Shown one piece after another: positions 1 through 51,474 of a stretch of DNA of 64,000 nucleotides. A program made the position numbers and the translations under genes. The stretch spans positions 186,001 to 250,000 of the IMG/VR virus record IMGVR_UViG_3300024999_000029, one strand, 5' to 3'. Below the pieces are notes generated by a model that was not told the origin of the DNA, made no database searches, and was given only the letters and a program-made list of their open reading frames with translations. The number at the start of each line of letters is the position of its first letter. Position 1 is the stretch's first letter.

Positions 1-277
1 CTAAACAATCTTGGTTATATATCTTGTTTAACTCAATCATTTATACCTCGTTATTTTATATTTTATTTAATTAAGACAGAACGAGAATTTGATATTAATT
101 TAAACTATAATGCATAAAACTCATTGCTGAAATTAAAAACGCAACTCCCATTTCAACTTTGTTAGGACAATATCCAAAGAACAACGATACAAATAAAATT
201 AAATAGTATAAACAAAATAGTATATTTAAAACCTTACCCATAGTTTTCTCCTTTCCATAAAAATCCGATTTTATTAA

Positions 278-649
278 TTATATTATTGATGGAAAATAAA
301 GCTCATTTGCTAATACGCTTTCTAATACTTTAAGATAAACTCCTAATTCACTATCTGAATGAAAATAGTATTCTTTAATCCACCTATCTAATTCTTTGTC
401 ATAGTTTTTAATTATTCCTTGGTACTTTTTATTTTTTGACGGACAAATATCTTTAAGGCTGCCTTTGCATGATTGATAACAATTATATCCTTCTTTACTT
501 TCACATTTATTTATTTCTAATCTTCTTGTATCTGACCTAAGTAATGTATAAACCATTGTCTTAATATCTTCTTCTACTTGCTTTTTAACCGCTTTTTGCT
601 TATAAACTCTTGCTTGATAATAATAATCCTTATTGTCTGTTCCTATCAT
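278..649 (-). CDS. hypothetical phage protein
   Basis: 123-aa ORF with AGGAGG RBS upstream. Confidence 0.7.
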   Translation of the reverse strand: MIGTDNKDYYYQARVYKQKAVKKQVEEDIKTMVYTLLRSDTRRLEINKCESKEGYNCYQSCKGSLKDICPSKNKKYQGIIKNYDKELDRWIKEYYFHSDSELGVYLKVLESVLANELYFPSII

Positions 650-689
650 GATATCCTCCTTATTTTATATTTTAATTAAAAGTCTTATT

Positions 690-836
690 TTATTTATATT
701 CCCAATTTGCAATATATGGCTGTCTCATTGCCTGTTTTAACCATTCCTGAAAATCTGATTCAATTATGTTTTCTGGAGTTTGTTCAACATAATCCATTTC
801 TTTTTCGACACAACAACATTTAAAAATAATTTTCAT
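690..836 (-). CDS. small hypothetical protein (48 aa, MKIIFKCCC...)
   Basis: Read manually; AGGAG RBS at about 843-848; stop codon lies inside the 677-692 palindrome. Confidence 0.6.
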   Translation of the reverse strand: MKIIFKCCCVEKEMDYVEQTPENIIESDFQEWLKQAMRQPYIANWEYK

Positions 837-873
837 AATAAACTCCTTTTATATTTTGAATCAAAATCATATT

Positions 874-1284
874 TTAAAGCATAGACTCAATTTCATTAAG
901 CTCAAGTTCAACCTTTTTACCATCGGATAATAGCTTTAAAAGTTTATCTTCCATCAATTTAAGATTATTTTCTTCTGCTTTTCGTGAAAGAATTGCAATT
1001 CTAGATTTAATATCGGTGATCCAATCTTCTACCTTATATCCACTAATCACATATTCGTCCAATACACCTAAATCTTTTGCGGAAAGCACATAGGAGTTTA
1101 GTTTAATCATAATTGAAATCAAATCTGGTCTTGCCAAAACCTGAATATTATATCTTACAGCATCTACCTCTAGAGAACAATTTGTAACTGGCGAAAACCT
1201 TGTTGATTTACTCAATTGGGCTTTTTTACTTTCTATTTGCTTCTTTAAAAGCATAATCCTTTGGTCATTTGTTTCATTATTCAT
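874..1284 (-). CDS. hypothetical coiled-coil phage protein
   Basis: 136-aa ORF, translationally coupled to 1287..2387. Confidence 0.7.
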   Translation of the reverse strand: MNNETNDQRIMLLKKQIESKKAQLSKSTRFSPVTNCSLEVDAVRYNIQVLARPDLISIMIKLNSYVLSAKDLGVLDEYVISGYKVEDWITDIKSRIAILSRKAEENNLKLMEDKLLKLLSDGKKVELELNEIESML

Positions 1285-1286
1285 AA

Positions 1287-2387
1287 TTAACTTTTATCCT
1301 TTCTATATAATTTATTGTTTTTTAAATATTGACACTTCAATGATGGTTTAAAATTATTATAAATTTCTTCTATAGTCCCACTAAATAAAGGCTCTACGAA
1401 AATAGACTTTCTATTACTTCTCCAATAATCACCTTCATAAGTATAATCATTTTGATTTTTAGGACGAACATAAAATCCATTTTTATTTTTGAGTTCTGTG
1501 TCATTTAGTCTGCTATATTTTTTAACTTCAAACTTTTCATATTGCCCATTTATATTTCCATAAAAAATACGATACTGCCAATAAGAATTTTCATCCTTAT
1601 ATTGCAATTCAAAATCTTCTAATGACCTTAATTCAAAAGTATCTTTACTTACATCATAAGGAGAATAATAAGAATTGCATTCTAACTTATCAAATATTTC
1701 TGAATAATTACTTACACATCTATCATCAATACAAGAAATTAATTTCCCGCCAATGCTTTTATGTTCTATAAAACTAATATCCTTATCTTGTTTACAAAAC
1801 CAAAAACGTAATCCTTCATTTTCTCCATAATAGCCATAACTATCAAATCTACCCATATAAATAATTTCTTCATTTTTATTTGTCAGGTATGTTGCTCCAA
1901 TAATTAAATCTTTTGTCTTAATGTAATTTTTAGAATAAATTAATTTATTAAATTCAATAAGTTCTTTATAATCTGGAGAATCTGTTGGAATTAAAATTAA
2001 GTCCTTTCCATCCCAACCATATACGAAATCACCTTCTAACCCCTTACCTTTTGTCGAGGTAGTGTTTTCTAGAATATACAACAAGTTAGGAATAGTAATT
2101 TCAAACTCAAACCCTCTAGGGTCATAAACTCTACAATATGTCTGCCGATGATTCCAGCCAGTATCATACCCACCAGCTTTCTTATTAAGAACAAATCCAG
2201 ATGTCGGCACATTCTTAGCTATAACATTCTCTATTTTGTCATCTCTCCAGCTATTCCATGATGTTTCTTTTCTTAATACTCCTTTCTGGTCATAATAAAT
2301 TATGTAAGCTAACTTTTTTGTATATGTGTCACTTCTGTTTTGAAAGCCTACATTGATTTTTTCTGGAATAAAAATATTACTTTTCAT
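1287..2387 (-). CDS. conserved hypothetical phage protein
   Basis: 366-aa ORF with strong RBS. Confidence 0.75.
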   Translation of the reverse strand: MKSNIFIPEKINVGFQNRSDTYTKKLAYIIYYDQKGVLRKETSWNSWRDDKIENVIAKNVPTSGFVLNKKAGGYDTGWNHRQTYCRVYDPRGFEFEITIPNLLYILENTTSTKGKGLEGDFVYGWDGKDLILIPTDSPDYKELIEFNKLIYSKNYIKTKDLIIGATYLTNKNEEIIYMGRFDSYGYYGENEGLRFWFCKQDKDISFIEHKSIGGKLISCIDDRCVSNYSEIFDKLECNSYYSPYDVSKDTFELRSLEDFELQYKDENSYWQYRIFYGNINGQYEKFEVKKYSRLNDTELKNKNGFYVRPKNQNDYTYEGDYWRSNRKSIFVEPLFSGTIEEIYNNFKPSLKCQYLKNNKLYRKDKS

Positions 2388-2426
2388 ATATTCTCCTCTC
2401 TTTTATATTTCAATCAAAAGCACACT

Positions 2427-3107
2427 TTATATAGATTTTGCCTTTTTACAATCATACCTTATCCATAAATAAATCTTATAATATCTTTCATAATTATATT
2501 TTCTATTATCAATATTGTACCAATTGTTTAAACTTGTCGTGTGCTTTTCGCTATTGCATACCCTACAACTCGGAATACAATTTTTAATATCATTTCTACC
2601 ATCATCTATAACATGCTCTTTATGTAATTGTTGTTTGAATTTATTTTTATGTTCTTCTTCTGTAAACCCACAGTACGCGCAAGCATTATTAAAATATTCT
2701 TTACAAGCTTCCCATTGTTCTACAGATAATTTATGATTTTTACTTCTTCTTTTACGACCATATATTTTATATTTTTGTTTTCCATTTTCCGACTGTCTAT
2801 ATTTTTTACGTAAATCTGACACATATTCTATATTTTTATAATAATACTCTTTATTTGTTTCTAATGTAGCTTTTTTATTATTCTTATAATGATTTCTACG
2901 ATATTCTAATGCTTCATTACCACGCTTCTCTTGCCTTTGTTTTGCTTGTTCTATCATTATGTCTTTATGATTTTCATAATATATCTCGTTTATTTCTTTT
3001 TGACATTTCTTACAGATATTATTTAACCCATCTTTAATGTTTGCTCGCTTTCCAAAGTATTCTAAGGTAGCTGGATAATTTTCCTTACATGTTTTGCATG
3101 TTTTCAT
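2427..3107 (-). CDS. HNH endonuclease (Zn-binding)
   Basis: CxxC N-terminus; CAYCG...HKEHV...CRVCNSEK HNH motif. Confidence 0.8.
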   Translation of the reverse strand: MKTCKTCKENYPATLEYFGKRANIKDGLNNICKKCQKEINEIYYENHKDIMIEQAKQRQEKRGNEALEYRRNHYKNNKKATLETNKEYYYKNIEYVSDLRKKYRQSENGKQKYKIYGRKRRSKNHKLSVEQWEACKEYFNNACAYCGFTEEEHKNKFKQQLHKEHVIDDGRNDIKNCIPSCRVCNSEKHTTSLNNWYNIDNRKYNYERYYKIYLWIRYDCKKAKSI

Positions 3108-4202
3108 TAATCATTTTACATCTCCAATCTCTACGAAAGAGTTATTTGGTTGAAATTTTATATAATTCATTTAAATTCCAAACCATAGTTTTCTGCAAAT
3201 GTATCTAAATGGGCAGCTAAAAAATCAAGCAATTCTCTGAAAAATGTATCATCATCATGCATTAATTCCACCGCATTATCAATTCCTTCTTGAGTCCATT
3301 CATACTTCTTACCATTTTCTTCTGGCAACCATTCAAATAAAAGTTTTAAAGTTATTTTCATTGCATCTCTTGTACTCATACCTAATCTCCTCTCAATATA
3401 AATTCTCTAATTTATTTACTTTTGTTCAATATACTTCAATTTTTCAAATGTGTCTAAATCAGGATTTATAGTCATCAATACTTCCCATAATACAGTTTGA
3501 TAATCTGAATTATCATCAAAGTATATAACATTATTTGCAATTCTATAAATTTCGTCTAGCTTTTCTTTTACATCTAACATAACTCCTCCATATCCATGTC
3601 ATAACTAACATAAGCATTAAAAATATCATTATCAAAAAACTTTTCTTCAATTAATCCACCTATAAAACAATTAAACTCATAATCTTCTACATCTGGTTTA
3701 ACATTATGAGAAATATCATAGCAATTTTCTCTTTCAAAGTACTCCCATTGAATTTTAATATCGGAATATTGTGATTTTACTTTTTCAATAAATTCCGCTA
3801 TTACTCTTTCAGTTAACTTATGTTTCTCTTCACACTTAATAGCTTGTTCTTCAGAGTAATACTTTTCTGAACATATATCACATTCATGATAAGTAACTTT
3901 TTTCATATGCCCTCCAATCTCAATCAAATGCAAGGTTTATTTAGTTTTTATAAAGAATATCTTTTTATAATCTAATGGTTTCATTTTCGATGACAAGTCA
4001 ATTAAAAGTAATGTTAAAGGGATTGCAATGTTCATACAGGGTATAAATATTACAAATATTGAAAGTCCCACTGGGGAATACTGAACATTTATCCCATAAA
4101 TAAAATATAATCTAAAAATTAAATAAGAAATTATTATTGATATCAAATAAATAATCGTAAACATTTATTTCTCCCCCTCTGTGTTTGATTAAAACACAAT
4201 TT

Positions 4203-4484
4203 TTATTTAGATTTTCTATGTAGATTTTCAATAATTATATTTAAAAAGTTACTATTTCTAATACCAGCGATTGTTTTGCAAATCCATTCTTTAATAAGTT
4301 CACCTCTTGGGTCAGTTAAAGAACTCCATTTCATTGATAACTCTTCTAAAATTTGTGATAAAGGCTTATATTCATTTTCGTTTACTCTTACAGTTATACC
4401 TAAATTAGATAATACAATTTCGCAATTTTTTATATTCTCATTATAATTATTTTCTATATTTTCAAATATTTCATCGTTGTTCAT
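4203..4484 (-). CDS. small protein resembling a fragment of a phage tape-measure protein core
   Basis: LGITVR...YKPLSQILEELSMKWSSL...IAGIRNSNFL resembles the TP901-type TMP core segment (recognition by eye). Confidence 0.5.
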   Translation of the reverse strand: MNNDEIFENIENNYNENIKNCEIVLSNLGITVRVNENEYKPLSQILEELSMKWSSLTDPRGELIKEWICKTIAGIRNSNFLNIIIENLHRKSK

Positions 4485-5988
4485 TATTCACACCTCACTT
4501 TTCTCAATAAATCATAAAATTTATTTAAAATCCTTCTTCAATTCTTCCGCCAAAAACCATATCTACTGCAACAATGCTTCTTTCAAAACCATCAATAACT
4601 CCTTTTAGATATTCTGTATCAGATATTTGTTCTCTTGCTAATTCCATAAATTGATATATAAAATTCTTGAAACTTTTAATATCTGCTTCATAAAACTCTA
4701 AAGCATCACTAACCGTAAATAGTTCACAATCAAACTCTTCCTCTAGTGGTATAAGTTTCTCACACAATTCTTTATCCATCATAAATTAATTTCTCCTTTT
4801 CTATATAAAACCAATTTTTTATCTAATTACTTCATTTTCAAACTTTTTTAATTCTTCTAGCATTTTATTGTCTTCGTAATAAAAAGGATCTTTTTCTAAA
4901 TAGTTCAACCAATTGAGCATAAATTGTCCAAATCTCCAGTTAGGGACTTTGTTCCAAACTCTTTCAATCTCACTTAAAAATGGCTTTATTTTTTCTGGAT
5001 TTCTCAAAACATCACTCCTTAACTTTTATATTTTAGATTGAGAACTATATAAACTCATTACAAGTCATTTTTAAAAGGAAGGGGTAAAATAATACCCCGT
5101 ATAATTACGTTTTATGAATGCCCTAATTGCTCCCAATAATCAGTGTCTATTTTTTCTTTCTGTTGAATACTAAAGCCTTTGATGTCATTGAAATTGAATA
5201 CTATAACTATATAGCCATTAGCATCATTAAAATCTGTTTTATTTGATGATAATAGAACACGTAAGGCTTCTACTGCATCCACAATTTGCTGACTATTAAC
5301 TAATAAAGAACAATTCGCTTTAAACATTTTTTTAACCTCCTTTTTAATTAAACGTCATTTCAATATGGCAGTGGTTATCACTGAGCGAAGACACTAAAAT
5401 AGTTGAATTTCCAAACTTTATTCGCCTACAATCTCCGTTGACAACCTCCACTTTCTTTAATTCATTAATCGCTCCCACAATTTTGATTAATTGTCTGGCT
5501 AATTTTCTTTCCACTACATCTTTATCTGTCATACTTTTCACCTCCTTGAAGTAATAACTTCAATTATTTTAAACGACCCACTTAAAGTGTAATTTATATC
5601 AAAGGTTGTTGTCTGTTAATTTTATTGCGACCATTCTGATCCTCTTATTTTTTTCATTGTAGAAATATAATTCTCTATGTATTTTTTATAATCATATGTT
5701 TCTTTTAATATTATTTTTCTTACTGTAAACGGACTTTCTTCCCACATTTTTTCAAAATATGTACTCATTTTTTACCTCTTTATTTTATATTTTAGTTCAC
5801 TGAATTATTGCTAAAATTTTATCTACAGCTTTATCTACATCTATATTTCGTAACTGTTTTTGTTTTTGATATTTTAAAATTCCATAAACTTTATCAGCTC
5901 TCGTCGCAAAATTGCTTTTACGTGTTACTTGTTTACCAATCCTAGTAGGATTACGACTTATATTCCTCATATTCCCTCCAAAATTACA

Positions 5989-6237
5989 TTAAATACTCAA
6001 ATATTCTACTGAATAATCACTCCAGCCAATTATTTCAATTGCAGAATTTGCTTTTAATTTTAAGTCATCGTCATAAGCATTCATATAATAATCAAGCTTA
6101 AATTGAAAATTATCATATGGATTCACAATAACTTATGGCTTGTTTAGATTTGGTAGTTTAACTCCAATAAAAATGTACTCATTTTCTTTTTTAATGCTCG
6201 CCTCAATGAAACTCTTTAGTCTTTCTTTTTGTGTCAT
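5989..6237 (-). pseudogene. phage hypothetical gene with in-frame TAA (MTQKERL...NKP*VIVNPYDNF...)
   Basis: RBS and ATG at 6237; frame continues cleanly past TAA at 6133-6135 to a stop at 5989. Confidence 0.6.
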
Positions 6238-6287
6238 TGTTTATATTCTCCTTTATATTTTTATTAAAACTGCTATTTTAATCTAAC

Positions 6288-6498
6288 TTCATATTCTTTG
6301 TTCTATACTTTAAGTTACTTAGTGATAAAGAATCAAATTTATCACAATCCATTCTGGATTTTCATGTTGATTCACTAAAAACTCGCAGGAGGGTGTAGTC
6401 TTAACTAAATCCTATCTGCATTTCAGATTTAGTTACTTTACTAGCTTTTTCATCTGCCCCAATGGATTACACTTAAAGTACAGGATAAAGAATATGAA
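6288..6498 (-). ncRNA. putative structured RNA with ~28-bp closing stem and internal hairpins
   Basis: 6288-6315 is nearly complementary to 6471-6498; internal stems AATCCATT/AATGGATT, TAACTAAATC/GATTTAGTTA, GTGATAAA/TTTATCAC. Strand is assumed from the surrounding genes. Confidence 0.45.
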
Positions 6499-6823
6499 AT
6501 TTTCAATAAGTTATTGTTTTGATTTAAACTTTCTTAGCCTTTGAAATATCAATATAGTATTCTTCTCCAACTTCAAATTCTTCGGCTTCTTCAAATTCTT
6601 CTTTTTTATCATATAAATAAATATCTCTTTTACAAGCATTACAAACGCCATATGTATTTATTTTATCATTTTCTTTATGAAAGCAATTTGAACCGCAACC
6701 ACAGGCGTTCCTTTTACCTCTGATAAAAAATGATTCAATTTCACCATCTAATAATTTGATTTTTCTATTCATAATTACCTCTTATTAAATTTAAAATAAT
6801 ATAAGCATTTGAACAAAATTATT

Positions 6824-7026
6824 GTGGCTGGAGGGATTGGCTACCCTCAAAGATGTTACTATGGCTCTAATAATCTACACTAACGCTATAATACGTTACG
6901 CCTGTCACCTAGGACTCTAGCCACCATGTAGGAACATACGGGATGTTCTCACGCCTCGATTATTAGCTTAACCATTACTTCGCATCGGATTATTGTCTTA
7001 ACCGCCTTTAATTTGGCTACAGCCAC
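6824..7026 (-). ncRNA. tRNA-like structured RNA (~203 nt) with a large structured insert in place of the anticodon loop
   Basis: Acceptor-like GTGGCTG/CAGCCAC, D-like GCC/GGC, T-like GAGGG/CCCTC; internal CTAATAATC/GATTATTAG, GAACAT/ATGTTC, TAACG/CGTTA. Confidence 0.6.
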
Positions 7027-7037
7027 ATGAATAATTT

Positions 7038-7155
7038 GTAACTAGCAGGGCGGTGTATCCTGCATCTCTTTATCATAGCTCCCTATCTCATTTTATTGAG
7101 CGATTAACGTTTGTTAACGGAAGGGTTGATAGCAACCATTTCTATCCTTAGTTAC
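7038..7155 (-). ncRNA. second tRNA-like cloverleaf RNA (~118 nt)
   Basis: GTAACTA/TAGTTAC closing stem, GATAG/CTATC arm, GCAGG/CCTGC 3' arm, two small central hairpins. Confidence 0.5.
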
Positions 7156-7273
7156 AAATTTAAGTCCCGACATCTAAACACATTAGCCATTTCCACTATT
7201 CTAATGCCAAACTCAGTCAGGTGTTTCGCTTTTCACAGTGGTTTGTGTCAGCTAGTTTAATAAAATTGTCCTT

Positions 7274-7801
7274 TTATCTTGATATTAAAAACTTATCAAC
7301 AGCTTCTTGCACCTTATCTAATCCTTCTTCTACTGGTATGTAGGCATCAAAGTTATAATAATCCAAATCAATTTCACTTAGATGATTCTGCTGTTCTTTT
7401 GAGAGTGGACTTATTAATCCTTTTCTCACTACTCTTACAGACATTTCTTCAAAATCTGGAGAGTTCATGATATTAATTTCATTCTTAAATCTAGTATCTG
7501 GAATTATGATTACGTCATATTCCCTACCAAAAGTTTTAATAAACTCTCTCACAACATTAACCCATACGTCAGGATTCACATTTCTACCCTCATCAGTGCC
7601 AATGCGCTGCAAGATTGTGCGTCCAATATCATCTTTTTCGCCATTCCAGCCGAAATACTCTTTACATATAAATTTGAGATAATCCGCATAATGAATGATT
7701 AGTACATTTTTATCTTCTTGAAAAAGTTGTTTCTTTATCATTTTAGCTATAGTGTCTTTTCCTGAATTCGCCTTGCCACTAATAAATAATATTAAAGACA
7801 T
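7274..7801 (-). CDS. deoxynucleoside monophosphate kinase-like P-loop protein
   Basis: GKANSGKDT Walker A; LQRIGTD, PDVWV and DTRFKNE motifs of phage dNMP kinases. Confidence 0.75.
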   Translation of the reverse strand: MSLILFISGKANSGKDTIAKMIKKQLFQEDKNVLIIHYADYLKFICKEYFGWNGEKDDIGRTILQRIGTDEGRNVNPDVWVNVVREFIKTFGREYDVIIIPDTRFKNEINIMNSPDFEEMSVRVVRKGLISPLSKEQQNHLSEIDLDYYNFDAYIPVEEGLDKVQEAVDKFLISR

Positions 7802-7802
7802 T

Positions 7803-8474
7803 TTATTTCCTCCTATTTTCTTCTCTTATCACATAAGGTTTAGATAATAACTCTTCATTTTTCCATCCTATTTTTAATCTATATAAAATAGTTTTTGAGT
7901 TTAAGCCATATTCTCTTCCCCACTCTGATGCTGTTTTAGTTACTCCATTTATAGTTATAATGTGATTTGTTCTTCTATTGTTTCCTTGTGTTAAATGGTC
8001 TGCCCATCTGCAATTGCTTGGCTCATAATTTCCATTAACGTTTATTCTGTCAATTTCCAAATCATCTCTATAACCATTTTGTATTGCCCAATTATAAAAA
8101 TTTACAAAGTTAGTCAACCATTCATCACATATTTTTATTCCTCTGTCACCATAGTTTTTATAATTAACGTTATAGTTTTTATAACACCTTTGTCTCATAA
8201 GCCTCCAAATATTATAAATTCTACTATTCGTCATTTTGTGAGTGCCTTGTGTGTTGTTGTGATCATCTAATATCTCTTTTGCTAAACAGCCGCAACTTTT
8301 AGTGTTTTTTGATACCACTTCGTTTGCTCCTATTTTTTTCTCGTTCCCACATTCACATAACCACAGCCATTGAACCCTACCATATTTATTGTTTTCAACT
8401 CTTTTAATAGCCGTTAATCTTGCAAATTTCTGACCTGTCAAATCATTAAATTTAGGTATACCTATGACCTCCAA
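7803..8474 (-). CDS. HNH-type homing-endonuclease-like protein
   Basis: DLTGQKFARL, CECG, SCGC, YGDRGIKIC, IDRINVNGNYEPSNCRWA signature. Confidence 0.75.
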   Translation of the reverse strand: MEVIGIPKFNDLTGQKFARLTAIKRVENNKYGRVQWLWLCECGNEKKIGANEVVSKNTKSCGCLAKEILDDHNNTQGTHKMTNSRIYNIWRLMRQRCYKNYNVNYKNYGDRGIKICDEWLTNFVNFYNWAIQNGYRDDLEIDRINVNGNYEPSNCRWADHLTQGNNRRTNHIITINGVTKTASEWGREYGLNSKTILYRLKIGWKNEELLSKPYVIREENRRK

Positions 8475-8477
8475 ATT

Positions 8478-9116
8478 TTATATTTTATCTTTTAAAATAT
8501 ATACCTCTAATTTCCTTACTCCAAAATCCATTGCATCTGAGTTATTTTTCATATATACATCAATACAATTATTTTTTATTGCTCCGCCTCTATCTTCTGT
8601 AATAAATATACCTTCATTTGGATAATCCTTAAAATATGGTATATATATTTTTGTCCCAAATGGTATTCTTCTTCCAGCTGCTATTGTACGCCATTCCCTA
8701 ACCTTTTCCCCCGATGCAGTAATTCCATATGATGGGCTACTAGGATATTTTTGACAAGATTCATAAGATAAATCATAAGCAGTGACTTTCATTTTACATT
8801 TTTCAATCACTTCGTATCTATCAAATCCACCTCTCGATGCTAATTTTGTTTCTTTTTGTTTTATATTTTGCTTTATTGGAATAGGTTTAATTTCTTCAAC
8901 TTTAGGTGTGTTTACAACTTTTTTAGTTTCAATATTTGACTTAGATTTTGGAATTGCATTTATTTTTTCTATACCACTTTTAATACTTTGGAAAATTAGT
9001 AATAATACTGCTGTTAAAATGAGAATTACTATAAACGAAAATCTTTTCAATTTACGTATGTTGACTTTATATTTTCTGTTTGTTTTGAGAGATTTAAATA
9101 TCAGTTTTTTTAACAT
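8478..9116 (-). CDS. membrane-anchored 3D-domain (cell wall) protein
   Basis: N-terminal TM helix; VTAY...TASG...DRGGAIK...IDVYM 3D domain. Confidence 0.8.
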   Translation of the reverse strand: MLKKLIFKSLKTNRKYKVNIRKLKRFSFIVILILTAVLLLIFQSIKSGIEKINAIPKSKSNIETKKVVNTPKVEEIKPIPIKQNIKQKETKLASRGGFDRYEVIEKCKMKVTAYDLSYESCQKYPSSPSYGITASGEKVREWRTIAAGRRIPFGTKIYIPYFKDYPNEGIFITEDRGGAIKNNCIDVYMKNNSDAMDFGVRKLEVYILKDKI

Positions 9117-9142
9117 TGATTTTACTCCTTCCTTCGTGTTAA

Positions 9143-9171
9143 ATTATACATGAAACATTTACTAGTGTCAA
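9143..9171 (-). promoter_or_regulatory. sigmaA-type promoter TTGACA-17-TATAAT
   Basis: Consensus hexamers upstream of 8478..9116; AACTAAAATATAAAA motif just upstream. Confidence 0.75.
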
Positions 9172-9201
9172 TAACTATTTTATATTTTAGTTTATTGACT
9201 T

Positions 9202-13926: not shown

Positions 13927-13928
13927 AT

Positions 13929-17045: not shown

Positions 17046-17063
17046 AATTTCACCTCTTTTAAT

Positions 17064-40106: not shown

Positions 40107-40239
40107 TACCTCCTAATACCTTTATGTACCTCCTAATACCTTTATGTACCTCCTAATACCTTTATGTACCTCCTAATACCTTTATGTACCTAATTATACC
40201 TTTATGTACCTCCTAATACCTTTATGTACCTAATTATAC
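40107..40239. repeat. 20-bp tandem repeat TACCTCCTAATACCTTTATG, ~6.6 copies
   Basis: Directly visible; two copies carry the variant TACCTAATTATAC. Confidence 0.95.
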
Positions 40240-40937: not shown

Positions 40938-43644
40938 TTTTAATCACTCCATCAAATTCTAATTCTATTGTTTAACCTCTGTTATTATTCCAATAACCGT
41001 TTCCCCATTTTTTAAATGTGCATAAGCTATGCCGTCACTATCCTGCGTTATCCTTACAACGTCTTCAAATATTCTATTGCCTGTAAAAATTACAGTCATG
41101 TTTTTACACCTCTGTTATATAATTTACTCAAATCTTTGCTTAATATTATTCATAATACAGCCTAATTCACTAACTGTTATATCTTCCTTCTCCTGCTCCA
41201 TATTCCTGCTAATATCTATAAAATTTAATACCTTTTCAAACTCTACCGCCTCAAGTTCTTTAACTGCTATTTTCGCCAGTTCTGTATTTGATATTATCAT
41301 AACTTTCGCCTCCTGTTATATTGAAATACGGATTTTATTTGTTTATCTTTCAAATAATATCTCGAAAATTGGTATGCCTTCATTTCTCATTCCGCTTAAT
41401 GTACCTCTTAACTTTTCTAATTGTTTTTTAACCGCTTGACGTTTTTTATCTTCTCCGATAACTCTATCATCTAAATATATTACTGAGAAATTGCCTTTTA
41501 AAATATCATCCTCCATGAATTTATAAATCATTTCATCTATTCCAGCATTTACAATTGCATTTCTAATTGTAGTTAATACATTTATTTCTGTTCCGTAAAA
41601 TGTACAATCAAGCAAGCATTTAAAAGCCGTTTCATTTTCATTATACATTTTCTCTAATCTTATTGTTTTTTCATACATGATTAATTCCTCCTTAAATTTT
41701 GTTCAAATGCTGAATTTATTTTATTTTAAATTGTTTTCAATTCTTTTTGCCCATTCTATATAATAACCTTGTTTGCTTACTGGAATATCTTTAAACATAC
41801 TCCAAAACATTTCTGTCAAATAAGTATCTCCTATTCTTTCGGCAATTTCTTCAATTTCTTTTAAATTCTTTTCTTTATTAGTCATTGAATAAAACCTTCT
41901 TTCTATTTGTTTTAGTTGAACTATTTTTCTATTTCTGTTATACTTAAATTGTTATATAGCTTTCTAAGCGTTCGAATCGGGATGTGCGGTAAACGTAAAA
42001 GCTATATAGTTTTAACCAATACACAATGTGTATTTAAATTGTAGTAAAATTTGATTTTTAACCAATACACATTGTGTAGGGAATAGGACTGATATAAAAG
42101 CCAGCCCTATTTTTGTTCCTGTTATATTACTTTGATTAAATCATATTTTCCTAAAAAGTTTTTAACAATTAACGCTTCACAAGGTTCAAACTCATAATAA
42201 CGGTCATCCTCTTCATCCGCTGGAATAGCTCCTTTCGTTAACCAAATTATATCACTATCAAGCACTATCTTACGCAACTCTTTTAATTCGTTAATGGCTT
42301 CTTGAGATGGACTATATTTAATATCCCATTTTGCCCTATCATCATAGTCAAGGATAAAGCCATCAAATTCCTTTTCTGCTCTTTCTAATACATAATTTTT
42401 GTGCGCATATTGCCCTAACTCCAAACAATCTTTTAAATATTGACTTCCATTTTCTAATATCCATTTTTTCTTTTCTTCTTCTCTTGCCAACTTTTCTTCT
42501 TGCTCTTTTCTTTTCTTTTCTGTAATTTCTTGTTCCTTTGCTTTTCTTTCCTGTTCCTTCTTATCTATTCCTTCTTGTTCTTTATCTGCATATTTAGCCA
42601 AAAATGACTTTGATAATTCTGAATTATTGGGAAATATAATTTGATCAAAGCTATGGCTTCCATAATTATTAATTTTTAATTCAAAACTAGTCCAACTATA
42701 CCAAGCACCATATGTTGATATAAAAGGTTTAATGTTGATATCTATTATTTCATATTCTAATTCTTCAGCCTTTTTCAACCATTCTTGATTATTATCTTTT
42801 TGTAATTGTTTGGCAATTTCTTCTTTTCCATTTTCAACAAACCAAGCAGCTTGAGCATATCCTCTCTGTTCTTCTTCTGTTATTTTATCACAAAATTTTA
42901 AAACCTCTACATAAATATGATTTACCAGTTCATTTTGATTTTTCATAATACTTCTCCTTCTGTCTGCTCATTACAGACATTTCAAAATTCATTAATTTTG
43001 TTATAGTTTCTCATTTCTAGCTACTATAAAACCGTTATGTTATGCTCTTTTATGGCTCATACACAAGCCATATATTTTATAGCAGAATTGCTATTTTTTC
43101 AATAAATCCACTCATCGAATTAGTTTTAGCTGTATCAATTTTAGCTTTTCCGCTGGCGGTTATTTGGTAAGCTGTTATATCAGTATTACAAACCTCAACC
43201 AAAATACTACCGATTGGTAATTTATGTTCAAAATTTATATTTAAGAAATCTCCAATAAAAGCATAACCATTTGTTTTCGTAATATCTACACTTTTAATGA
43301 CCTTTACCCAGTGTTTGTATTTTGTTTTATGATGATTTGCTGAATTTTTGCAGTCGTGAGTATAAACTATTAATTTTTCTTCAGGTGGCTTTCTGGATTT
43401 TAATTCAGAATTGATTAATTCATTCAAATTTTTTAATTCTTCAATTGACATATTTTTTAGAGTTTCATTATTAAACATTTTATTTTCCTCCTTGGCTCAT
43501 TAGCCTTGAATTTTGTAACAGCTCATTAACTGTTATATGTAATTATATGTTAGTGTTTATCAACTGTCAATATTAGTATAATACTATCATATACGATTGT
43601 CAAGAATTCTATGCTATTATTTTATATTTTATTTCATTAATTTA

Positions 43645-43908
43645 CTATTGCTCTATTAATTGTGTTATATCAATATTTAATAAGTTCGCAAGTTTTAAAG
43701 CTATTTCAAAGGCTATAGTATGACGTTTTTTGGGCTGTCTATATGCGTATATTGTTTCTATCTTTAAATTCAATTTATCGGCTATATATTGGGTTTCACA
43801 GCTTGACTCATTGATATATTTTACAATATTTTTCTTAATAATTACAGGATCAACACTGTTATAATAATTAATGAGTGCTTCCAATTCTCTTTGTTCTTGT
43901 GTAATCAT
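43645..43908 (-). CDS. HTH protein
   Basis: IADKLNLKIETIY...FEIALKLANLLNIDI. Confidence 0.65.
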   Translation of the reverse strand: MITQEQRELEALINYYNSVDPVIIKKNIVKYINESSCETQYIADKLNLKIETIYAYRQPKKRHTIAFEIALKLANLLNIDITQLIEQ

Positions 43909-45091
43909 GGTTTCGCCTCCTGTTATTGTAGAAAATCATGGTTTTATCTTAAAATATTATCACATACTCTATAGCCCATTAATGCAATTTCCCTTGATGA
44001 TACAATTTTTGAATTTGAATCTTTAAAGCACTCAGTTTCAAAACTAGCTTTTTTTAGTTTTATATAGCTCTCCTCTTGTTTCGTTTCCCAATTATAAAAA
44101 ACTATTGTTTGCCCTTCTTTTACGGCTTTTAATATTTGTATGACTTCTAAATCTAACATTGTAGAGCCTCCTCAATTATATTTTACTTTTTGTTATACGT
44201 TAAAATTGGATTTTTATTCATTTATTAATTTTTCTATTGCCCAATCTGTAAAACTATCTCTTTCAATAATAAATAATTGATCATCGATTTTTATTTCAGT
44301 ACCATTTTTTAATGGACAGTCTGGCTCGCCTGTGAAAGTATTCCAATGATTTACATAAATTCCTTTTGAATATCTGTCTTTTATATGTCTACTATAAAAC
44401 CTTTTTGTGTTTTTATCTTGATAAATTACTCTACATTGTCCCGTTTGTTCTTCAATTTTAATTAAGTCTAACATTTTTTATTCCTCCATGTAATATATTT
44501 TGGTTCGTGTTATATAATATTTTGGCTTATTAATATAATGTATTCCATTTTTCGGTCAAATAGTATTCTGGTATTTTATATTTACTTTTTAACTTGTTGT
44601 ATGTAGTAACTGTTATATCAATACACTCATCTATTGTTGGTATGCCTATTTTAAAGCCTTTTGGATATTTTTTTAATCTCTTTTCAATCTCTCTTTTACT
44701 CTTAATATAAACCAATCCTCTAAAATTTTCATCCTCATCTAATTTAACATAGATTTTATTACCAAAAGCATCTTTAATTTTTTCGTCAATTAATTCCATT
44801 TTTAAAACCTCCATGTATTATATTTTAGTTTGTGTTATATGATATTGTGAGTTTATCTAATTATCTAAATATAATGATATTCTTTGTTTTAGATAATATT
44901 GATTTAAGTCTAATATTGCAGATAGTTTCATTATGCCTTTATTATTAAATGTAAAATTATAGCCATTAAGTCTAATATATTCATTCCAAAGTTGTTTACC
45001 TTCATACCATAAATTTCTTTGTTCAGTAGTCATTTTTAAAACTCCTTTCAGATATATTTTGACTTCTGTTATATAAAATAACCATTTTATA

Positions 45092-47803
45092 TTATACTGC
45101 AATTTCATTTGTTTCTTCTTCCTTATTCAATATTATAATTCTTGTTTTAACATTTGTCATTTCAAAAGTTCCACATTCCAGACTTATTGTATCATAGGTT
45201 TTTTCTTCTAGCCATTCTCTAAAATTTTGACTTTCTTTATCATTCGCAAAAGTCCAATGTTCTGAAGTAATTGAGATTAATTTTCCGCCAGTTTTAAGCA
45301 ATTTGTAAGCGTGTTGTAAATGTTTTATATCTTGATTATTGGTGAATGGTGGATTCATTATTATAGCATCATAATAATTATATTTTTGATATTCTAGTAA
45401 GTCATTACCTATTACATTATGATTTTTTAATCTCAATAATTCTGCAAAGCTGCTATTCCACTCTATAATGTCAACATATTCTGTTATAGCTTTTATTTGA
45501 TCTGCAATATTGCCTATTCCTGCTGACGGTTCTAGCACCCTACTGTTATTGTCTATGTTTGCAAATTCAATCATTTGTGAGGCTGTTTCTTTTGGCGTGA
45601 AATTTATATCTCCTTTTTGTCTTAGTTTATATTCATTTTCTAACTTTTTAATTTTTTGTTGTATCGGATTTTTGTATCTGTCTATGCTATTATAAATTAT
45701 ATTATATTCCTCAACGGCTTTCGTTAATTTTTGAATATTTGTTATTCCGTATTTTTTTAATTTGTTTTGTTTCGTTGGTACTTCTTTGTTATACCATCCA
45801 TCCAAGGGTAAGGAATAATCTACTTGCGGAAATTTTAAACCTTGCGTATTCCTTCCATACTTCATTATATAATACTGGTGAATATTTTCCCTAAATGCGC
45901 CAACTATCAAAGCTTTTTCAAGTTCTGTTATTACTGTATTATCAATTAATTTTTGTTGCACATATTCCAATAATTTTATATTAATTTCTAATGATTCTTT
46001 TTTACTATCTCGGCTTTCTTGCTCTCTCATTCTTTTATATGTGTTTGTTTGATAATCTCCTGATAATGCTGCTATCTTGCTCTGCAATGATTCTATATTT
46101 TTATTTATCTTTTCAAGCAAATTATTCTTTTCGGCTTGTTGTCGCTCATGCTGTTCTTTTTGTTCCGCTTCTGCTTTAATTGCTTGTAATACGTTCTTTA
46201 ATCCTTCAAATTCGATATAGTTTAATAACTGTTCTGTTATATTAATATTATGCTTTTGCACGTATTCAGCAATATTATTTTTATATTCTTCATTTGTGAA
46301 ATAGTTTTCACTATTTAAGCCCAATTTGCAAATATTTTCCGTTGATTCATCAATAATATTATCTGCTGTTTCTTGCTCTTTGTTTGTTGTTACTTCTTCA
46401 GATTGTGGAATATTAACACCTTTTAAAGCTTCTGACGGTTCATATCTAAATATAAAACCATGTTTAAATTTAGAATAATAACCTTTTATTTTTTTCATTT
46501 GTTCCGATACTTTTATATATTCATCACTTGTTAGTTTATTAACTATTTTTACTACCCATAAAGCGGAATTGTCGCGCGTGTCTGTATCGGCTGTTATAGT
46601 GTATTCATTATTAATAATATTTGAATTTTCGGTTTGTTTCGTCTGTTCTGTTATAACTTCTTTTGATTTTTTAGATGTTTTTTTTACCTTTTCAATCTTT
46701 ACCCATTTTTCAACCTCTGTTATTTCCTCAACTTCTTTTAGTTCAAATATTTTTATATTTCCTTTTTTTAAGTCTTTTAACATTCTATCTTCATAATCAT
46801 AATATCTTTTAGGGTTTGTTAATTGCATAAATTTTCTTTTTTCGCTTCCTACTATTTCGTAACTAAAAGAATTTTTTTCTTTCCTTATTCCTTGCCATGT
46901 TCCGCTTCTGATTTGTTCGCCTGTTATCTTCCAATATCCGCCATGAGTTGTAAATGTTAAATAGTCGCCAATTTTAAAAGAATTCCTTTCAACTTGAACC
47001 ATTTTTAAAACTTTTTTTACTTCTGTTATTGTCTTTTTTTCATATCCTGCCTTTACTTGTTGGTCTTCTGCTTCTTTTATATTTTCTTTTGTTCCGTCAT
47101 ACATACCACTAAAACCATTTACAATGCTTTCTATTTTAAGAATAAATGTTTTAAAATCATTTACGGTTTTTAACTCTTTTTCTGTTAGTTCTTTCTTTTG
47201 TGGCTGCTCTCCGTTCCATCCTCGCCAGTGTGTATAACCTTCTTTATATTCCATTTTTATAATGTCGAATTCATATTCTTTCGGTAAGTCCGAATATTTT
47301 GTTATTCCTGTTCCTTTATCGTATATTCTACTATCTTTTTCTATGTGCCATTTAGACGTTGAAGGGTTCGCCATAAATAAAGGATATTTATATTTTAATG
47401 TTTTTGTATTTTCTTTTGTTTGTTGTTTCTGTTCTGCTGATTCTTTTATTTTTTTTATTAGTTTTTTAGCGTTTGTTTCTTCTCCTTCTGTTGCTCCGTT
47501 CGCTTGCGTCATTGCTTCAAGTTTTTTGATTTTTTCATAGTCTATATTTGAATTTATAGTGCTGTTATACGAATATACTTCTTTTCCTGAATAGTTTTTT
47601 ACTTGCCATTCCTCAACGTCAACACACAGTAAAAAACCATTTTTTTCTGCTATTCCATCCCAAGAAGCAGGGTCGTAATAATCACTCATAGAGTCGCTTT
47701 TATCTTCTTTATATCCGTATAGCTTCCAGCCTCTATTTCGTAGTTCGTGTGCTATTCTTACTTTTGCATCCCTCATATCATAATAATTACTCATGTTTTG
47801 CAT
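45092..47803 (-). CDS. large protein with C-terminal N6-adenine DNA methyltransferase domain
   Basis: FTP, VLEPSAGIG (SAM binding) and MNPPF catalytic motif in the last ~180 aa; long uncharacterised N-terminus. Confidence 0.8.
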   Translation of the reverse strand: MQNMSNYYDMRDAKVRIAHELRNRGWKLYGYKEDKSDSMSDYYDPASWDGIAEKNGFLLCVDVEEWQVKNYSGKEVYSYNSTINSNIDYEKIKKLEAMTQANGATEGEETNAKKLIKKIKESAEQKQQTKENTKTLKYKYPLFMANPSTSKWHIEKDSRIYDKGTGITKYSDLPKEYEFDIIKMEYKEGYTHWRGWNGEQPQKKELTEKELKTVNDFKTFILKIESIVNGFSGMYDGTKENIKEAEDQQVKAGYEKKTITEVKKVLKMVQVERNSFKIGDYLTFTTHGGYWKITGEQIRSGTWQGIRKEKNSFSYEIVGSEKRKFMQLTNPKRYYDYEDRMLKDLKKGNIKIFELKEVEEITEVEKWVKIEKVKKTSKKSKEVITEQTKQTENSNIINNEYTITADTDTRDNSALWVVKIVNKLTSDEYIKVSEQMKKIKGYYSKFKHGFIFRYEPSEALKGVNIPQSEEVTTNKEQETADNIIDESTENICKLGLNSENYFTNEEYKNNIAEYVQKHNINITEQLLNYIEFEGLKNVLQAIKAEAEQKEQHERQQAEKNNLLEKINKNIESLQSKIAALSGDYQTNTYKRMREQESRDSKKESLEINIKLLEYVQQKLIDNTVITELEKALIVGAFRENIHQYYIMKYGRNTQGLKFPQVDYSLPLDGWYNKEVPTKQNKLKKYGITNIQKLTKAVEEYNIIYNSIDRYKNPIQQKIKKLENEYKLRQKGDINFTPKETASQMIEFANIDNNSRVLEPSAGIGNIADQIKAITEYVDIIEWNSSFAELLRLKNHNVIGNDLLEYQKYNYYDAIIMNPPFTNNQDIKHLQHAYKLLKTGGKLISITSEHWTFANDKESQNFREWLEEKTYDTISLECGTFEMTNVKTRIIILNKEEETNEIAV

Positions 47804-50800
47804 CTCCTTTGATTATATTTTGTTTAATTGGTATGGAGTTTTTGCAGATACTCCAATAAGCTGTTATAAGCTGTTAAACGGCATTATCAAATATTTCTTT
47901 AAAATCTTTTTTATAATGATTCCAATGTATTAAACTATATAATTCAGAAAATTTCATATTTAATATATTTTCGCTCGGTTTATTTAAAATATTTTCTATT
48001 ACTTCAACTTTCCAAGGCTTAAAATATTCACCAAGTTTTATATTACATTTTACAATAACTTGCATGGTTGTATGATTTGTTATATCAATATTATTTAAAA
48101 TATGCCTATCTTCTGGATGTTCTTTTTCTGCTATATGATAAGATTCAATATAATTTTCAATAATAAATGTAAACTGTGAATTTATTATCCCATTGCAATA
48201 TATATTTATTTCTGTTTCAATATCTTTTAAAAATTCAATTGCATTATTTGTTGACGTATAATTTTTATATAATAAGGTTTTTGAATGTGTTTCATAAAAT
48301 ATTTTACCATTCCACTTTTTTGCAATTTCCCATAATCCGACAATCTTCAAATATCCATGTTTATAATCATATTCTACATGATAATTTTTTGGTAATCCCT
48401 GCAATATCATTAATCCTGCTGAACCTTGTCTTTTAAAATGTGTTTTAATCATTTTTTCATTACCTCCATTTAATTTATATTTTTGTTATACTACTAAATG
48501 AATTTATTCCATATTTCTTTCAAGTTCAAAAGCAGCTATATCAACTGTTATATCAATTTTATATTGTAGAATTTAACAATAAACAAATATGTTAAATTTT
48601 CAATTTTTCCATAAATGCCATCAAATTGACCGCATCGCTAAGATGTTCATTTTCATATTTAAAAAATAACTTGTAGTTTTTCAATTCATTTATTTTATTT
48701 GTTTCAATTTGACATAATTCAGGGTTTTCTGTATAGACCATTACGCTGCCATCTTTTTTTACTTCAATACTGCATAACCCCTTTTTTTCTAAAAAATAGC
48801 ATATTTCTTTACGTACTAGTATTATTTCAATTCTATCAATCATGTTTAAGCCCTCCTAAAATTCATTTAAAAGTTATATTTGATTAAAAAGTTCTTCATC
48901 TTGTAAATCTGCAATTAATATATATATTTCAACTTCAGTCATTTTTTTACTAATTTTCACCATATTGCTTTTTTTAAACATATCAGTTCTAAAATAAAAT
49001 TTAATTTCTTTACTGTCATAGTTTTCTAAATATGGAGTATTACAATTATTCCAATTAATTTCATCATATAATTTTTTATCATCGACAAATTGAACCCCCT
49101 TGACTATATAGTCACAAATATTTTTGCCAAATTTAAATATATTCTTACGTTCGTAAGGATTTTTCCCTCTTATATCTTGATGAATTGCGCGTGATAAATA
49201 TCTTAATTGTTTTTCATTTAACTTAATCATCTTTTAAAATCTCCTTTTATTTTTAGCTGCTGTTATACAATTATATTTTAATTCTCACAGCTGCCAAAAG
49301 TTTTTATTTATTAAGTATAAGCATATTAAATTAATTATGATTGATTCTATGAAAATGTATGCTATAATGTTTTTAAGCGAATTTTTTAATTTAGTAGGGT
49401 TAAATTTTAGCTTGTGGGCTTTACATCTCGACAATGTAAAGCTTTTTTCTATTAGTGCGTAGGTAGTCATATTATTTTTATATCTCCTCTCTTTTTGTTA
49501 TCTGGTAGCGAATTTTTAAAGAATCCGCCAAAACTTTTATTTTACATTATATGTATATTTGTAGATATTTCCTAACAATTCAATTTCTACAGTTCCAACT
49601 TTCTTTGATTCGCTAACATTATGAATTTTTATATTTTTGATGATTGAATCTAATGTGTATGTTTTAATTCCTGCAAAAACGTTACTGGACATTGTTAAGA
49701 TTAAAACCGTTGTTATTATTACTTTTTTCATATTCTTATATCCTTTCTTTTTTATTGAGTTTTTACCCTTTATCACTTGCATAATTTTATGTTTTAATTA
49801 TGCAGCATTAGCTTACACAAGTAAAAATTATAAAATATGTGCATTGCCTTTGTTATCTATACCATTCAATTCTCTAACTCCAAATCCTGTTTTAATTTCC
49901 ATCTTTTTAAAATCAATGTTGCTAATCGTTGCTGTTACATACGTTTGATAATTTAACTGACATACTTCAGTTTGTAAAACCGTTACTGTGTCCCCTTCTT
50001 TCAAACTCTTAAATTCTTTTTTAGTCATTATTTCAAAAACCTCCTTTTTATTTATTTTACTGCTACCTTGACGGCTGTTATACCGTCAAACGCTTTGAGC
50101 TTAAAGTCTATTTATACACGCTCAAACGTGTTAATACAAAAATATAATTTTATTGGCTTTTAGGTGGTGCAATATAACCCATTTTTTGACCTTCAGAACA
50201 TATTTCACATAATTTACTAATTAGATTATATTTCCAGTTTTTTCTGGTAATCAATTTTTTTAAGATTTTATGTGCTTGTATATAATGATATTTGTTATAT
50301 GGCATTCTCAAAACCTCCATAAAATTATTTATTCATTGCAACTTCTAATTCACTAATTTTATTATTAAACCATTCAATTTCCTTTTTTAAGTCTGTTATA
50401 TCTTCTTCAGATAATTTTATATTGCTAATGTATAAATATTCTTCATTAGTTTCGAAATTTTCCCTAAAACGGCATTCACAGCCAGACTCCAATTCTTTTT
50501 TTGCAATAACAAGTGCTTTATTTTTTAACCTATTATATTCTTCTAAAAACAAATCTTTAAATTCGGCTGAATATTTATATTTTGATGTCTTGCCAACGCA
50601 CGCATAATATCTTTTGTCTTTACTGTAATACTCATAACCGCCACATCTTGCACTACTATGAGTAAAATTGCAGTTACTTATAAAAGCACTCTCTTGAGCA
50701 TCAGATAAATCTATTCTTGCAATTTCTCGACCTTTTAAAGTTGTTATAATTACATTATCAAACCAAGTTTTTTTCATGTTTTAACCTCCTTTATTCTCCT

Positions 50801-51474
50801 TTAAATTTAATATTTTTCCATTAAAATGTCAATTTTACTTTATCTTTAACACTTCCCAAATTCCATCAATTCCACTAAATTCATAACAATTTTTTAGTTT
50901 TAAATCCCAAGTAGCTTTTAGTTCTTTTACTTCTTTTGTATCAACATTTTTTAATATAAAAACTTTCATTTTAAAAACCTCCTTTTTATTTAATTACTTA
51001 TCTAATAACATAAGCTGTTATAACAAACTAACATTTTACATTAATTTTATTTCAAATTTAAAAATCACAGTCAAGCAACTTAAAAATTATATATGTATTG
51101 TTTAATATCTTATGTTATTAGTAATTAATCAAAGTTTTTTGGAATTTATTATAATTTCTGCTACGTTTTATAATTGCTACACTATGTGTTATTTACTCTT
51201 ATACGCTCCCGCTAACATTGTGTTGTTAATATGCGTACTATGTATAAGATACAATTATAAACCTTTTAAGGATGGTTATTTCCTGCAATTTTAGGGATAT
51301 GTAATCCTAAAATTTAACTGCTATTTGTTGCAGTCTGCAAATTCAATATTCAATTTTATAATTGATAGATAACGTCAATATTAGCTAAGTCAAGCCAATT
51401 TTATTGGTATGGTTGAACGTCCACAAGTATAGATATAGCTACCGCAAGGTGACTATCAACTTAACTTATAATTA

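Follow-up and report, generated by a model that had tools for sequence, protein, structure and literature searches.

The stoperators of cluster A mycobacteriophages, the sites of L5 gp71, occur in early and late operons and have been proposed to stop elongating RNA polymerase rather than to occlude one promoter. They are asymmetric 13-mers that are oriented with transcription, are bound by the immunity repressor and change with the immunity group. Proteins of the ParB fold read palindromes of 13–16 bp that are present in about a dozen or more copies, and KorB of plasmid RK2 represses globally, in cooperation with KorA, another repressor, which binds close by. The PeSL elements of T4-type phages, which carry a stem-loop and an early promoter, are longer and are conserved as a whole. 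Here, we analyse a 16-bp palindrome, TAAAA-N6-TTTTA, that recurs at gene junctions in a stretch of 64,000 nucleotides (hereafter the window), positions 186,001 to 250,000 of the 349-kb IMG/VR record IMGVR_UViG_3300024999_000029. A reading made from the letters alone (the sequence-only reading) had proposed that an integron-like system shuffles gene cassettes at these sites, or alternatively that they are stoperator-like sites of a recombinase-fold repressor encoded at 28930–29883.

By its predicted gene content, the window is an arm of an SPbeta-like phage, with genes resembling YopQ/SroE, YopR/MrpR/SroF and YopP/SroD. These phages serve as the model for arbitrium signalling and for an unusual repression module of two or three proteins. 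Two of these, SroE and SroF, are reported to bind at several places in the phage genome. The sro repression operon of SPbeta and phi3T is yopMNOPQR, in which SroD is YopP, SroE is YopQ and SroF is YopR (PMC10769878). SroE is described as a second repressor needed for lysogeny that may stabilise the complex of SroF with DNA, while SroF of phi3T, the homologue of MrpR, occupies as a monomer an asymmetric A-tract box of 26 bp, CAGTAATTTTATTTTTATTCTTAATG, with a reported readout of A-tract shape (bioRxiv 10.1101/2025.11.27.690993). Sequencing after chromatin affinity purification (ChAP-seq) of MrpR in SPbeta yielded ten peaks, each of them at SPBRE, an asymmetric element (PMC10516654). YopQ carries a domain of the ParB_N/Srx type (PMC8612738), and Salmonella DndB binds TACG-N10-CGTA, in which short inverted arms enclose a long spacer of free sequence (PMC4507180).

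The palindrome resembles the L5-type stoperators in that dozens of short sites are spread across the operons of a temperate phage, in short spacers or overlapping stops and starts; here, about 45 copies lie at junctions and 20 of them share the stop codon. It differs in being symmetric with a free 6-bp core, in being the same in distant phages and in probably not being the site of the main repressor, and an oriented A-box described below is the closer analogue. Like the operators of KorB, ParB and Noc (OB, parS and NBS), it is a multi-copy palindrome in the range of 13–16 bp, and the best fold matches of the window's YopQ-like model are ParB, Noc and KorB; however, those palindromes are specified through the centre, and the fold matches are weak. 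The SPBRE/SroF box belongs to the same phage family and regulatory neighbourhood, is likewise AT-rich and multi-copy and often lies 3 nt from the palindrome, but it is a phage-variable, asymmetric double A-tract of 15–26 bp read by a monomer, whereas the palindrome sets two 5-bp arms in dyad symmetry. The Salmonella DndB operator also has short inverted arms, a long unspecified spacer and a binder of the DndB family, to which the window's YopQ-like protein is matched by Pfam; it differs in having two copies at one promoter of a cellular defence operon, with other arms and another spacing.

Two further systems resemble the palindrome in position only. Integron attC sites are similar in lying one to a junction in a one-directional array of small genes and in overlapping stop codons, but they are imperfect palindromes of 57–141 nt that fold single-stranded and recombine at a fixed point in a conserved core, whereas the site described here has 16 bp, 5-bp arms, no folding signal and, in the four Spbetavirus genomes compared below, no breakpoint inside. 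PeSL elements are also repeated, intergenic and found at module boundaries in plastic regions of small early genes; the palindrome has no stem-loop or promoter. We place it among the dispersed phage operators, where it may already be known as the SroE box; no description of it was found in the literature searched, which did not extend to Brady et al. 2023 or Lazarevic 1999.

Enrichment, position and structure of the palindrome

The window has a G+C content of 27%; from position 1 to about 57.1 kb, its genes lie on the minus strand, and past that point on the plus strand. We confirmed that T-N-AAA-N6-TTT-N-A is over-represented at exactly one spacing and almost only in same-strand intergenic spacers. 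The exact form TAAA-N8-TTTA occurs 41 times, as compared to 19.0 ± 4.0 (maximum 31) in dinucleotide-preserving shuffles. When spacings from 0 to 18 were scanned, TAAAA-N6-TTTTA gave 19 copies at N6 and 0–6 at any other spacing, and non-palindromic combinations of arms gave no peak. The excess is intergenic: TAAA-N8-TTTA was found 27 times in intergenic DNA against 2–7 at other spacings, while counts in coding DNA were flat. The result also held when each spacer was shuffled with its stop codon fixed (27–28 observed against 2.9 ± 1.7, maximum 9–10); in this analysis, palindromic arms at N6 numbered 16 and the non-palindromic controls 1–4.

The fixed spacing claimed by the sequence-only reading is thus borne out, as are the junction positions of its roughly 45 copies, since all 45 listed starts lie at gene junctions. 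The list was real throughout but incomplete, having missed the copies at 45074, 50137 and 62657. Measured against TAAAA-N6-TTTTA, 17 of the 45 are exact, 19 have one mismatch and nine have two. The overlap with stop codons, described as frequent, was found in 20/45 sites, where the site's own TAA or TGA doubles as the stop of the upstream gene. In the minus-strand arm, the palindrome occupies about 42 of 119 junctions. Its first base falls anywhere from 3 nt within the stop codon to 9 nt past it, and its last base usually 12–30 nt before the next ATG; in long gaps, some copies adjoin only the stop and others only the ribosome-binding site (RBS).

As had been proposed, length is fixed and the core is free. 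The six core positions carry about 0 bits of information, whereas the T and A at positions 1 and 16 are conserved as well as the tracts, whose centres lie about 11 bp apart. All 47 examined cores are distinct, and pairs identical at five or more of the six positions numbered three, against about ten by chance, as is expected if the sites bind protein without inviting recombination. Pairing outside the five A-T pairs was at chance, and core pairs matched chance or fell below it. Variation at position 2 is independent of that at position 15, and there are neither compensatory changes nor a preference for G-U. As pairing stops at the 5-bp arms and there is no covariation, we rejected a hairpin. 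Terminator-like sites were absent from the coding strand in the 22–42 kb searched, and no Rfam family was found at the palindromes. A sigma-A promoter was likewise rejected, since there is no consistent -35/-10 geometry and no room ahead of the Shine–Dalgarno sequence (SD); a scan with the sigma-A consensus is uninformative at this G+C content.

Two parts of the minus-strand arm, at 27.3–32.6 kb and 51–57.1 kb, have nine long junctions and zero palindromes, and these are likely the parts expressed in lysogens. The statement of the sequence-only reading that the lysogeny module lacks junction sites therefore stands, whereas its extension to the rightward arm does not, as one copy occurs there at 62657.

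Relatives, neighbouring boxes and candidate binders

The palindrome is found beyond this phage. Against 0–2 copies at other spacings, the Bacillus phage phi3T has 23 exact palindromes in its early arm and five in its late arm, and Geobacillus virus E3 has 11. Two metagenomic relatives have 16 copies against about seven at other spacings (L011) and nine against 3.4 (L012, which bears AimR). In all four, the palindrome is placed as in the window, past the stop and ahead of the RBS, and all four have an adjacent YopQ–YopR pair. Loci with no more than YopQ–YopR in common with the window carry the palindrome. The motif is identical in five of the six lineages examined, and comparison of these genomes marks it as a trait of the SPbeta-like family. 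It is absent from SPO1, an unrelated phage of B. subtilis with many small genes. The sixth lineage (L022; an SPbeta-like arm at 1–18349 of a 124.6-kb contig of JGI 3300068079) has no copy and a faint excess of AAA-N6-TTT only; CAAA-N6-TTTG was considered as its variant motif and rejected, with three copies and no excess over other spacings. This lineage is a natural contrast for matching the palindrome to its protein.

The same phage as in the window is carried by a 132-kb ENA scaffold. A megablast search of 12 kb against the phage collection found no closer relative, a scan of viral contigs for MrpR returned the source contig only, and a scan of genome contigs for YopQ, with an alignment too divergent for the purpose, gave no match. 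We rejected the mapping of insertions and deletions with L002–L010, which are all the window's phage at 100% identity; an apparent difference in L005 is a scaffold gap.

A second repeated element, the A-box AAAATATAAAA, occurs in 35 copies in the window, where 2.5 would be expected, and in both arms its orientation follows transcription. At eight of the ten junctions that hold both, it lies 3 nt downstream of the palindrome, as does the copy at 663–673 (minus strand), and the same 3-nt spacing is seen in phi3T. It is also found just upstream of consensus sigma-A promoters (TTGACA-17-TATAAT) near 9.15, 19.7, 31.3, 43.6 and 55.9 kb; the copy at 9178–9188 (minus strand) adjoins its promoter directly, and those at 19728–19738, 31302–31312 and 55924–55934 (minus strand) and at 43620 share this layout. 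Further copies are at 57229, 59338 and 60074 on the plus strand. In phi3T, the 26-bp SroF box is the AGAATAAAAATAAAAT element beside the promoters. The A-box is likely the window's analogue of the SPBRE/SroF (MrpR) box, and is likely a better stoperator candidate than the palindrome for the MrpR-like repressor. Between phi3T and the window, the MrpR-type box differs and the MrpR proteins are 27% identical, while the palindrome is unchanged. We rejected the palindrome as the MrpR box, since the box of phi3T and its presumed counterpart in the window are asymmetric A-tract sequences distinct from it.

A third motif, the 8-mer TATAACAG (C-box), is present in 37 copies against four expected, all on the coding strand. 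Thirty-six of these fall in a 17-kb block at 33926–51022 (minus strand), and the other is at 20753. The C-box often follows the palindrome by 2–5 nt and directly precedes the SD, a position that ACAGAA occupies in phi3T, and it also occurs within genes. A possible function is that of an oriented site for a further regulator; alternatively, it may mark a module with a separate origin.

The MrpR/YopR/SroF-like recombinase-fold protein (28930–29883, minus strand; Pfam MrpR_N_CB and MrpR_C_cat) lacks the HxxR motif, and the A-box rather than the palindrome is its expected target by this comparison. Directly upstream lies the gene of a YopQ/SroE-like protein of the DndB family (29907–31220, minus strand; Pfam DndB). 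It has a predicted ParB/Noc/KorB-like fold: its structural model has a mean confidence (pLDDT) of 84, with best fold matches to ParB, Noc and KorB at weak E-values of 0.02–0.3. The DGxHR and QR motifs of the YopQ-like proteins are invariant across lineages. In the YopS position, on the opposite strand, is a gene for a CI/LexA-like repressor with HTH_3 and Peptidase_S24 domains (28271–28903, plus strand). It was rejected as the binder, as TAAAA-N6-TTTTA has no copy in its switch region, including a 71-bp inverted repeat; a helix-turn-helix (HTH) protein of YopS type was also rejected, because the HTH helices are not conserved among the phages that share the motif. The fourth protein, YopP/SroD-like and of the tyrosine-recombinase fold (56001–57095, minus strand; Pfam Phage_integrase, tblastx match to phi3T_95 and alignment), is encoded at the head of the minus-strand arm. 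In its alignment, Lys replaces the second catalytic Arg (R, K, H-x-x-K, H, Y), whereas the YopP-type proteins of phi3T and L012 have the full R-K-H-R-H-Y set. A sequence search of the PDB with it returned noise only.

Operator, recombination site or linker

The dyad arms and free core point to a dimer on double-stranded DNA. Most likely, as far as the motif itself can tell, the palindrome is a double-stranded site of two inverted half-sites (T-N-A-A-A) 6 bp apart that would be read by a dimeric phage-encoded protein. The reading that we favour, tentatively and at somewhat below even confidence, is that it is a stoperator-like dyad operator of the part of the lysogeny repression module (sro/yopM-R) other than MrpR, with YopQ/SroE as the prime candidate. 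We favour an operator because of the dyad, the DndB family and ParB-like fold of the YopQ-like protein, the proximity of 3 nt to the A-box and the site-free lysogeny regions. Our best guess, from sequence comparison and the structural model, ranks the YopQ/SroE-like protein (29907–31220) first and the YopP/SroD-like protein (56001–57095) second. About 45 junctions between cistrons would be occupied by the predicted binder, often with an MrpR-type A-box 3 nt away, and these occupied junctions would help to silence the long early operons in the lysogen. RNA polymerase could be blocked or trapped in the intergenic spacers, as at stoperators, or silencing could proceed in the way that KorB acts together with KorA.

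Several observations weigh against this assignment. L022 has no canonical palindrome despite an adjacent DndB-like/MrpR-like pair. YopQ homologues are only 26–36% identical across lineages, yet the palindrome is constant in five of six, and immunity-setting repressors and operators usually diverge together, as MrpR and its box do. Of the features of ParB/KorB-type operators, the 16-bp dyad is present and the YopQ-like protein has a predicted ParB-like fold, but the fold matches are weak and the free core is atypical, since ParB-type proteins usually also read the centre of the palindrome. Finally, the absence of the palindrome from the lysogeny module is a post hoc observation.

To compare breakpoints of homology, we used the right-hand 20 kb of phi3T, SPBc2, Goe12 and SPbetaL1, four Spbetaviruses with the same motif. 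Homology ended within 10 bp of a site in 7–9 of about 40 cases per genome (random about 1, maximum 6), and of 116 pairwise ends, 24 had an exact site no more than 28 bp away, as compared to 4.6% of random positions. None of 21 ends lay inside the 16-mer; they fell at site position 1 or 0–6 nt past position 16, so that they abut its edges. One 16-mer, TAAAATTCTAATTTTA, occurs with two left and three right contexts. Junctions were broken in 19/32 cases with a site and in 20/39 site-free spacers of similar length. As no end lies inside and breakage is not in excess, the palindrome marks the ends of modules and travels whole with either neighbour, and does not behave as the crossover point. It thereby shows module joins in mosaic genomes, though apparently not the crossover itself.

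These results do not support the integron-like cassette shuffling of the sequence-only reading; besides the breakpoints, the cores differ and the arms cannot fold like attC, and the Lys in the 56001–57095 protein speaks against the shuffling enzyme that had been named. Stated in full, this reading, which we consider unlikely, is that the palindromes are core-type sites of a YopP/SroD-type recombinase by which cassettes of 1–3 genes are inserted, excised or swapped. Two inverted arms with a 6-bp gap are the layout of a tyrosine-recombinase core site, the catalytic set is intact in phi3T and L012, SPbeta itself integrates by a serine recombinase instead, and the homology ends near sites and the 16-mer with several contexts would suit exchange there. 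However, a classical tyrosine recombinase requires identical overlap regions, and no two of the window's sites have one in common (47/47 cores differ); the specificity is only about 5 bp per arm, the 16-mer stays whole with one neighbour, breakage is no higher than in long site-free spacers, the window's enzyme has the Lys substitution, and DNA-metabolism genes (ligase, CCA-adding enzyme) are also flanked by sites. A variant, quite unlikely in our view, is that the palindrome is the working site of an orphan YopP/SroD-type recombinase that tolerates unlike overlaps, as the integrases of Tn916 and CTnDOT do. If so, SPbeta-like phages would own a cassette-exchange system that writes their mosaic early arms, and it would have left its traces in the breakpoints along site edges and in the use of one 16-mer in five contexts. 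It is very doubtful that the palindrome is a passive module linker, that is, a short shared junction that has no biochemical partner and permits gene-sparing exchange by homology or microhomology, in parallel with the linker idea of Susskind and Botstein and with PeSL. The breakpoints at site edges and the recurrence of one 16–23 bp segment across contexts are consistent with it, but a linker should be conserved over the whole site, whereas only the 5-bp arms and spacing are kept and every core differs; moreover, Bacillus and Geobacillus phages have the same arms as this phage of 27% G+C, and the breakage at sites does not exceed that of other long spacers.

The remaining explanations concern what else might read the motif. 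The stoperator alternative of the sequence-only reading fares better in its protein-binding part than in its choice of protein. MrpR/SroF does bind many dispersed sites in SPbeta-like genomes, and one end of the SroF box is similar to the outer portion of the palindrome's left arm in phi3T (AAATAAAAT); yet phi3T SroF is a monomer on an asymmetric box, the ChAP-seq peaks are all at SPBRE and exact palindromes in phi3T are two to three times as many as those peaks, the box diverges with its protein while the palindrome stays the same, and the window has its own oriented A-box in 35 copies. That the palindromes are stoperators of the 28930–29883 repressor is thus highly improbable. A signal in RNA, with UAAAA-N6-UUUUA as a processing site, a ribosome-release or ribosome-loading element or a weak hairpin, is very unlikely. 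The motif is invariably located in the transcribed interval from stop to SD, sometimes 1–3 nt from the SD, often includes the stop codon and shares some spacers with self-cleaving or structured RNAs; nevertheless, reverse-complementary arms are meaningless in single-stranded RNA unless paired, five A-U pairs with a 6-nt loop are unstable, the pairing test gave no extension, compensation or G-U preference, and some copies stand beside the stop only or the RBS only. We give equally little room, or slightly less, to a conserved host factor or DNA shape, in which the A-tract and the T-tract, separated by one turn of the helix, would form a bent or narrow-groove element. The motif is unchanged across hosts of different classes, its tracts have a suitable distance and SroF is reported to read A-tract shape, but SPO1, also on B. 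subtilis, has no copies and neither has L022, the flanking T and A are conserved like the tracts, and the N5 spacing is not enriched. That spacing is the layout of the ComK AT-box, AAAA-N5-TTTT; we know of no Firmicute regulator whose site matches the palindrome. The dyad operator of a second repressor, our favoured reading, would give SroE/YopQ a concrete candidate DNA target. In addition, a 16-bp dyad on a third to half of the early-gene junctions, common to Bacillus and Geobacillus phages and this low-G+C metagenomic phage, is a simple signature by which the early arms of SPbeta-like phages can be recognised in metagenomes.

Site copies and further features of the window

The copies are given here with mismatches counted against TAAAA-N6-TTTTA; being symmetric, they have no strand of their own. 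The palindrome at 258–273, TAAAATCGGATTTTTA on the minus (coding) strand, is exact and lies 4 nt past the stop and 16 nt before the ATG. Exact junction copies that overlap the stop are at 4190–4205, 4806–4821, 17577–17592 (A-box at +18), 26233–26248 (C-box at +4), 26935–26950 (the last before the site-free lysogeny module), 44201–44216 and 50822–50837 (the final site of the arm). Other exact junction copies are at 12536–12551, where the stop of the CCA-adding-enzyme gene is 55 nt before, 16072–16087, 18126–18141 (A-box at +5), 23592–23607, 35629–35644 (A-box at +6) and 45074–45089, the last one of those missed earlier and situated after the stop of a gene for a 903-aa protein with a methyltransferase domain.

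Single mismatches are found at 11693–11708 (TAGAA), 16258–16273 and 35444–35459 (both with stop overlap), 16553–16568 (the SD begins 1 nt past the site), 22922–22937 (29 nt upstream of the intein-bearing NAD-ligase gene), 23749–23764, 24516–24531, 32696–32711 (the first past the lysogeny module), 38058–38073 (A-box at +5), 38993–39008 (A-box at +6) and 43931–43946 (C-box at +5). Two mismatches are found at 2414–2429 (stop overlap, A-box at +4, after a YoqL-like HNH gene), 3399–3414 (TAAAT/AATTTA), 4508–4523, 25226–25241, 34813–34828 (TGAAA, C-box at +4), 35896–35911 and 41703–41718. At 677–692 and 861–876, the latter with a TTTGA arm, the site's own TAA is the stop codon and an A-box stands at +5. 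A TTTGA arm is also present at 24933–24948 and 25868–25883, and at 11315–11330, which is at a stop only. TTTCA replaces an arm at 33728–33743 and 41322–41337 (C-box at +3), and TGAAA at 40650–40665 (C-box at +5). Both arms are symmetrically altered at 33869–33884 (TCAAA ... TTTGA), and the copy at 35161–35176 has TGAAA ... TTTCA (C-box at +5).

Some copies stand in longer gaps. The palindrome at 6265–6280 adjoins only the downstream RBS, with the previous stop 243 nt away and an A-box at +5. The one at 7261–7276 adjoins only the upstream stop and is followed by 488 nt of non-coding DNA; this gap of about 500 nt contains a skipping-rope RNA at 7037–7156 (minus strand; Rfam RF02924, 52.5 bits). 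At 40242–40257, the palindrome lies at a stop and precedes six tandem copies of a 20-bp unit (40107–40231, 94% matches), which extend towards the gene starting at 40087 and each bear an AGGAGG-like SD on the coding strand. An exact copy at 42045–42060 lies in a 302-nt non-coding gap with a direct repeat of about 20 nt on both sides, ACAC-A/T-(A/T)TGTGTATTGGTTAAAA, which may be a duplication scar. The near-match at 50137–50152 (TTTTG arm, at a stop), also missed earlier, is directly upstream of a Pistol self-cleaving ribozyme at 50061–50131 (minus strand; Rfam RF02679, 68.7 bits), which lies between it and the next RBS. The sole junction copy of the rightward, plus-strand arm, at 62657–62672, is at the stop of 61861–62673.

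Other features complete the window. Three diverged paralogues of YoqL-type free-standing HNH endonucleases are encoded on the minus strand at 2427–3107, 26246–26914 and 33886–34539. Their C-terminal parts, at 39–53% identity to phi3T, are among the best-conserved segments; the mapping of module boundaries through these paralogues within the window was rejected, since they are too diverged. The gene for an NAD-dependent DNA ligase (19761–22892, minus strand) is split by an intein whose endonuclease domain is of the LAGLIDADG type (Pfam Intein_splicing, Hint and LAGLIDADG_2), and a YopX gene is also present. The 71-bp inverted repeat (79%) at 28107–28177, where the CI/LexA-like gene and the leftward genes diverge, probably serves the CI/LexA-like repressor as its operator region. 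A stretch of 2.1 kb without open reading frames (ORFs), at 50970–53055, contains the iteron-like 16-bp palindromes TAGGACTATAGTCCTA (51711) and TAGGTCTATAGTCCTA (52156) and three 24-bp tandem units at 52108–52183, and may be an origin or control region. The first large gene of the rightward arm (57662–58711, plus strand) has weak Pfam hits to a C-terminal HTH like that of sigma-70 region 4, and its product may be a phage transcription factor.

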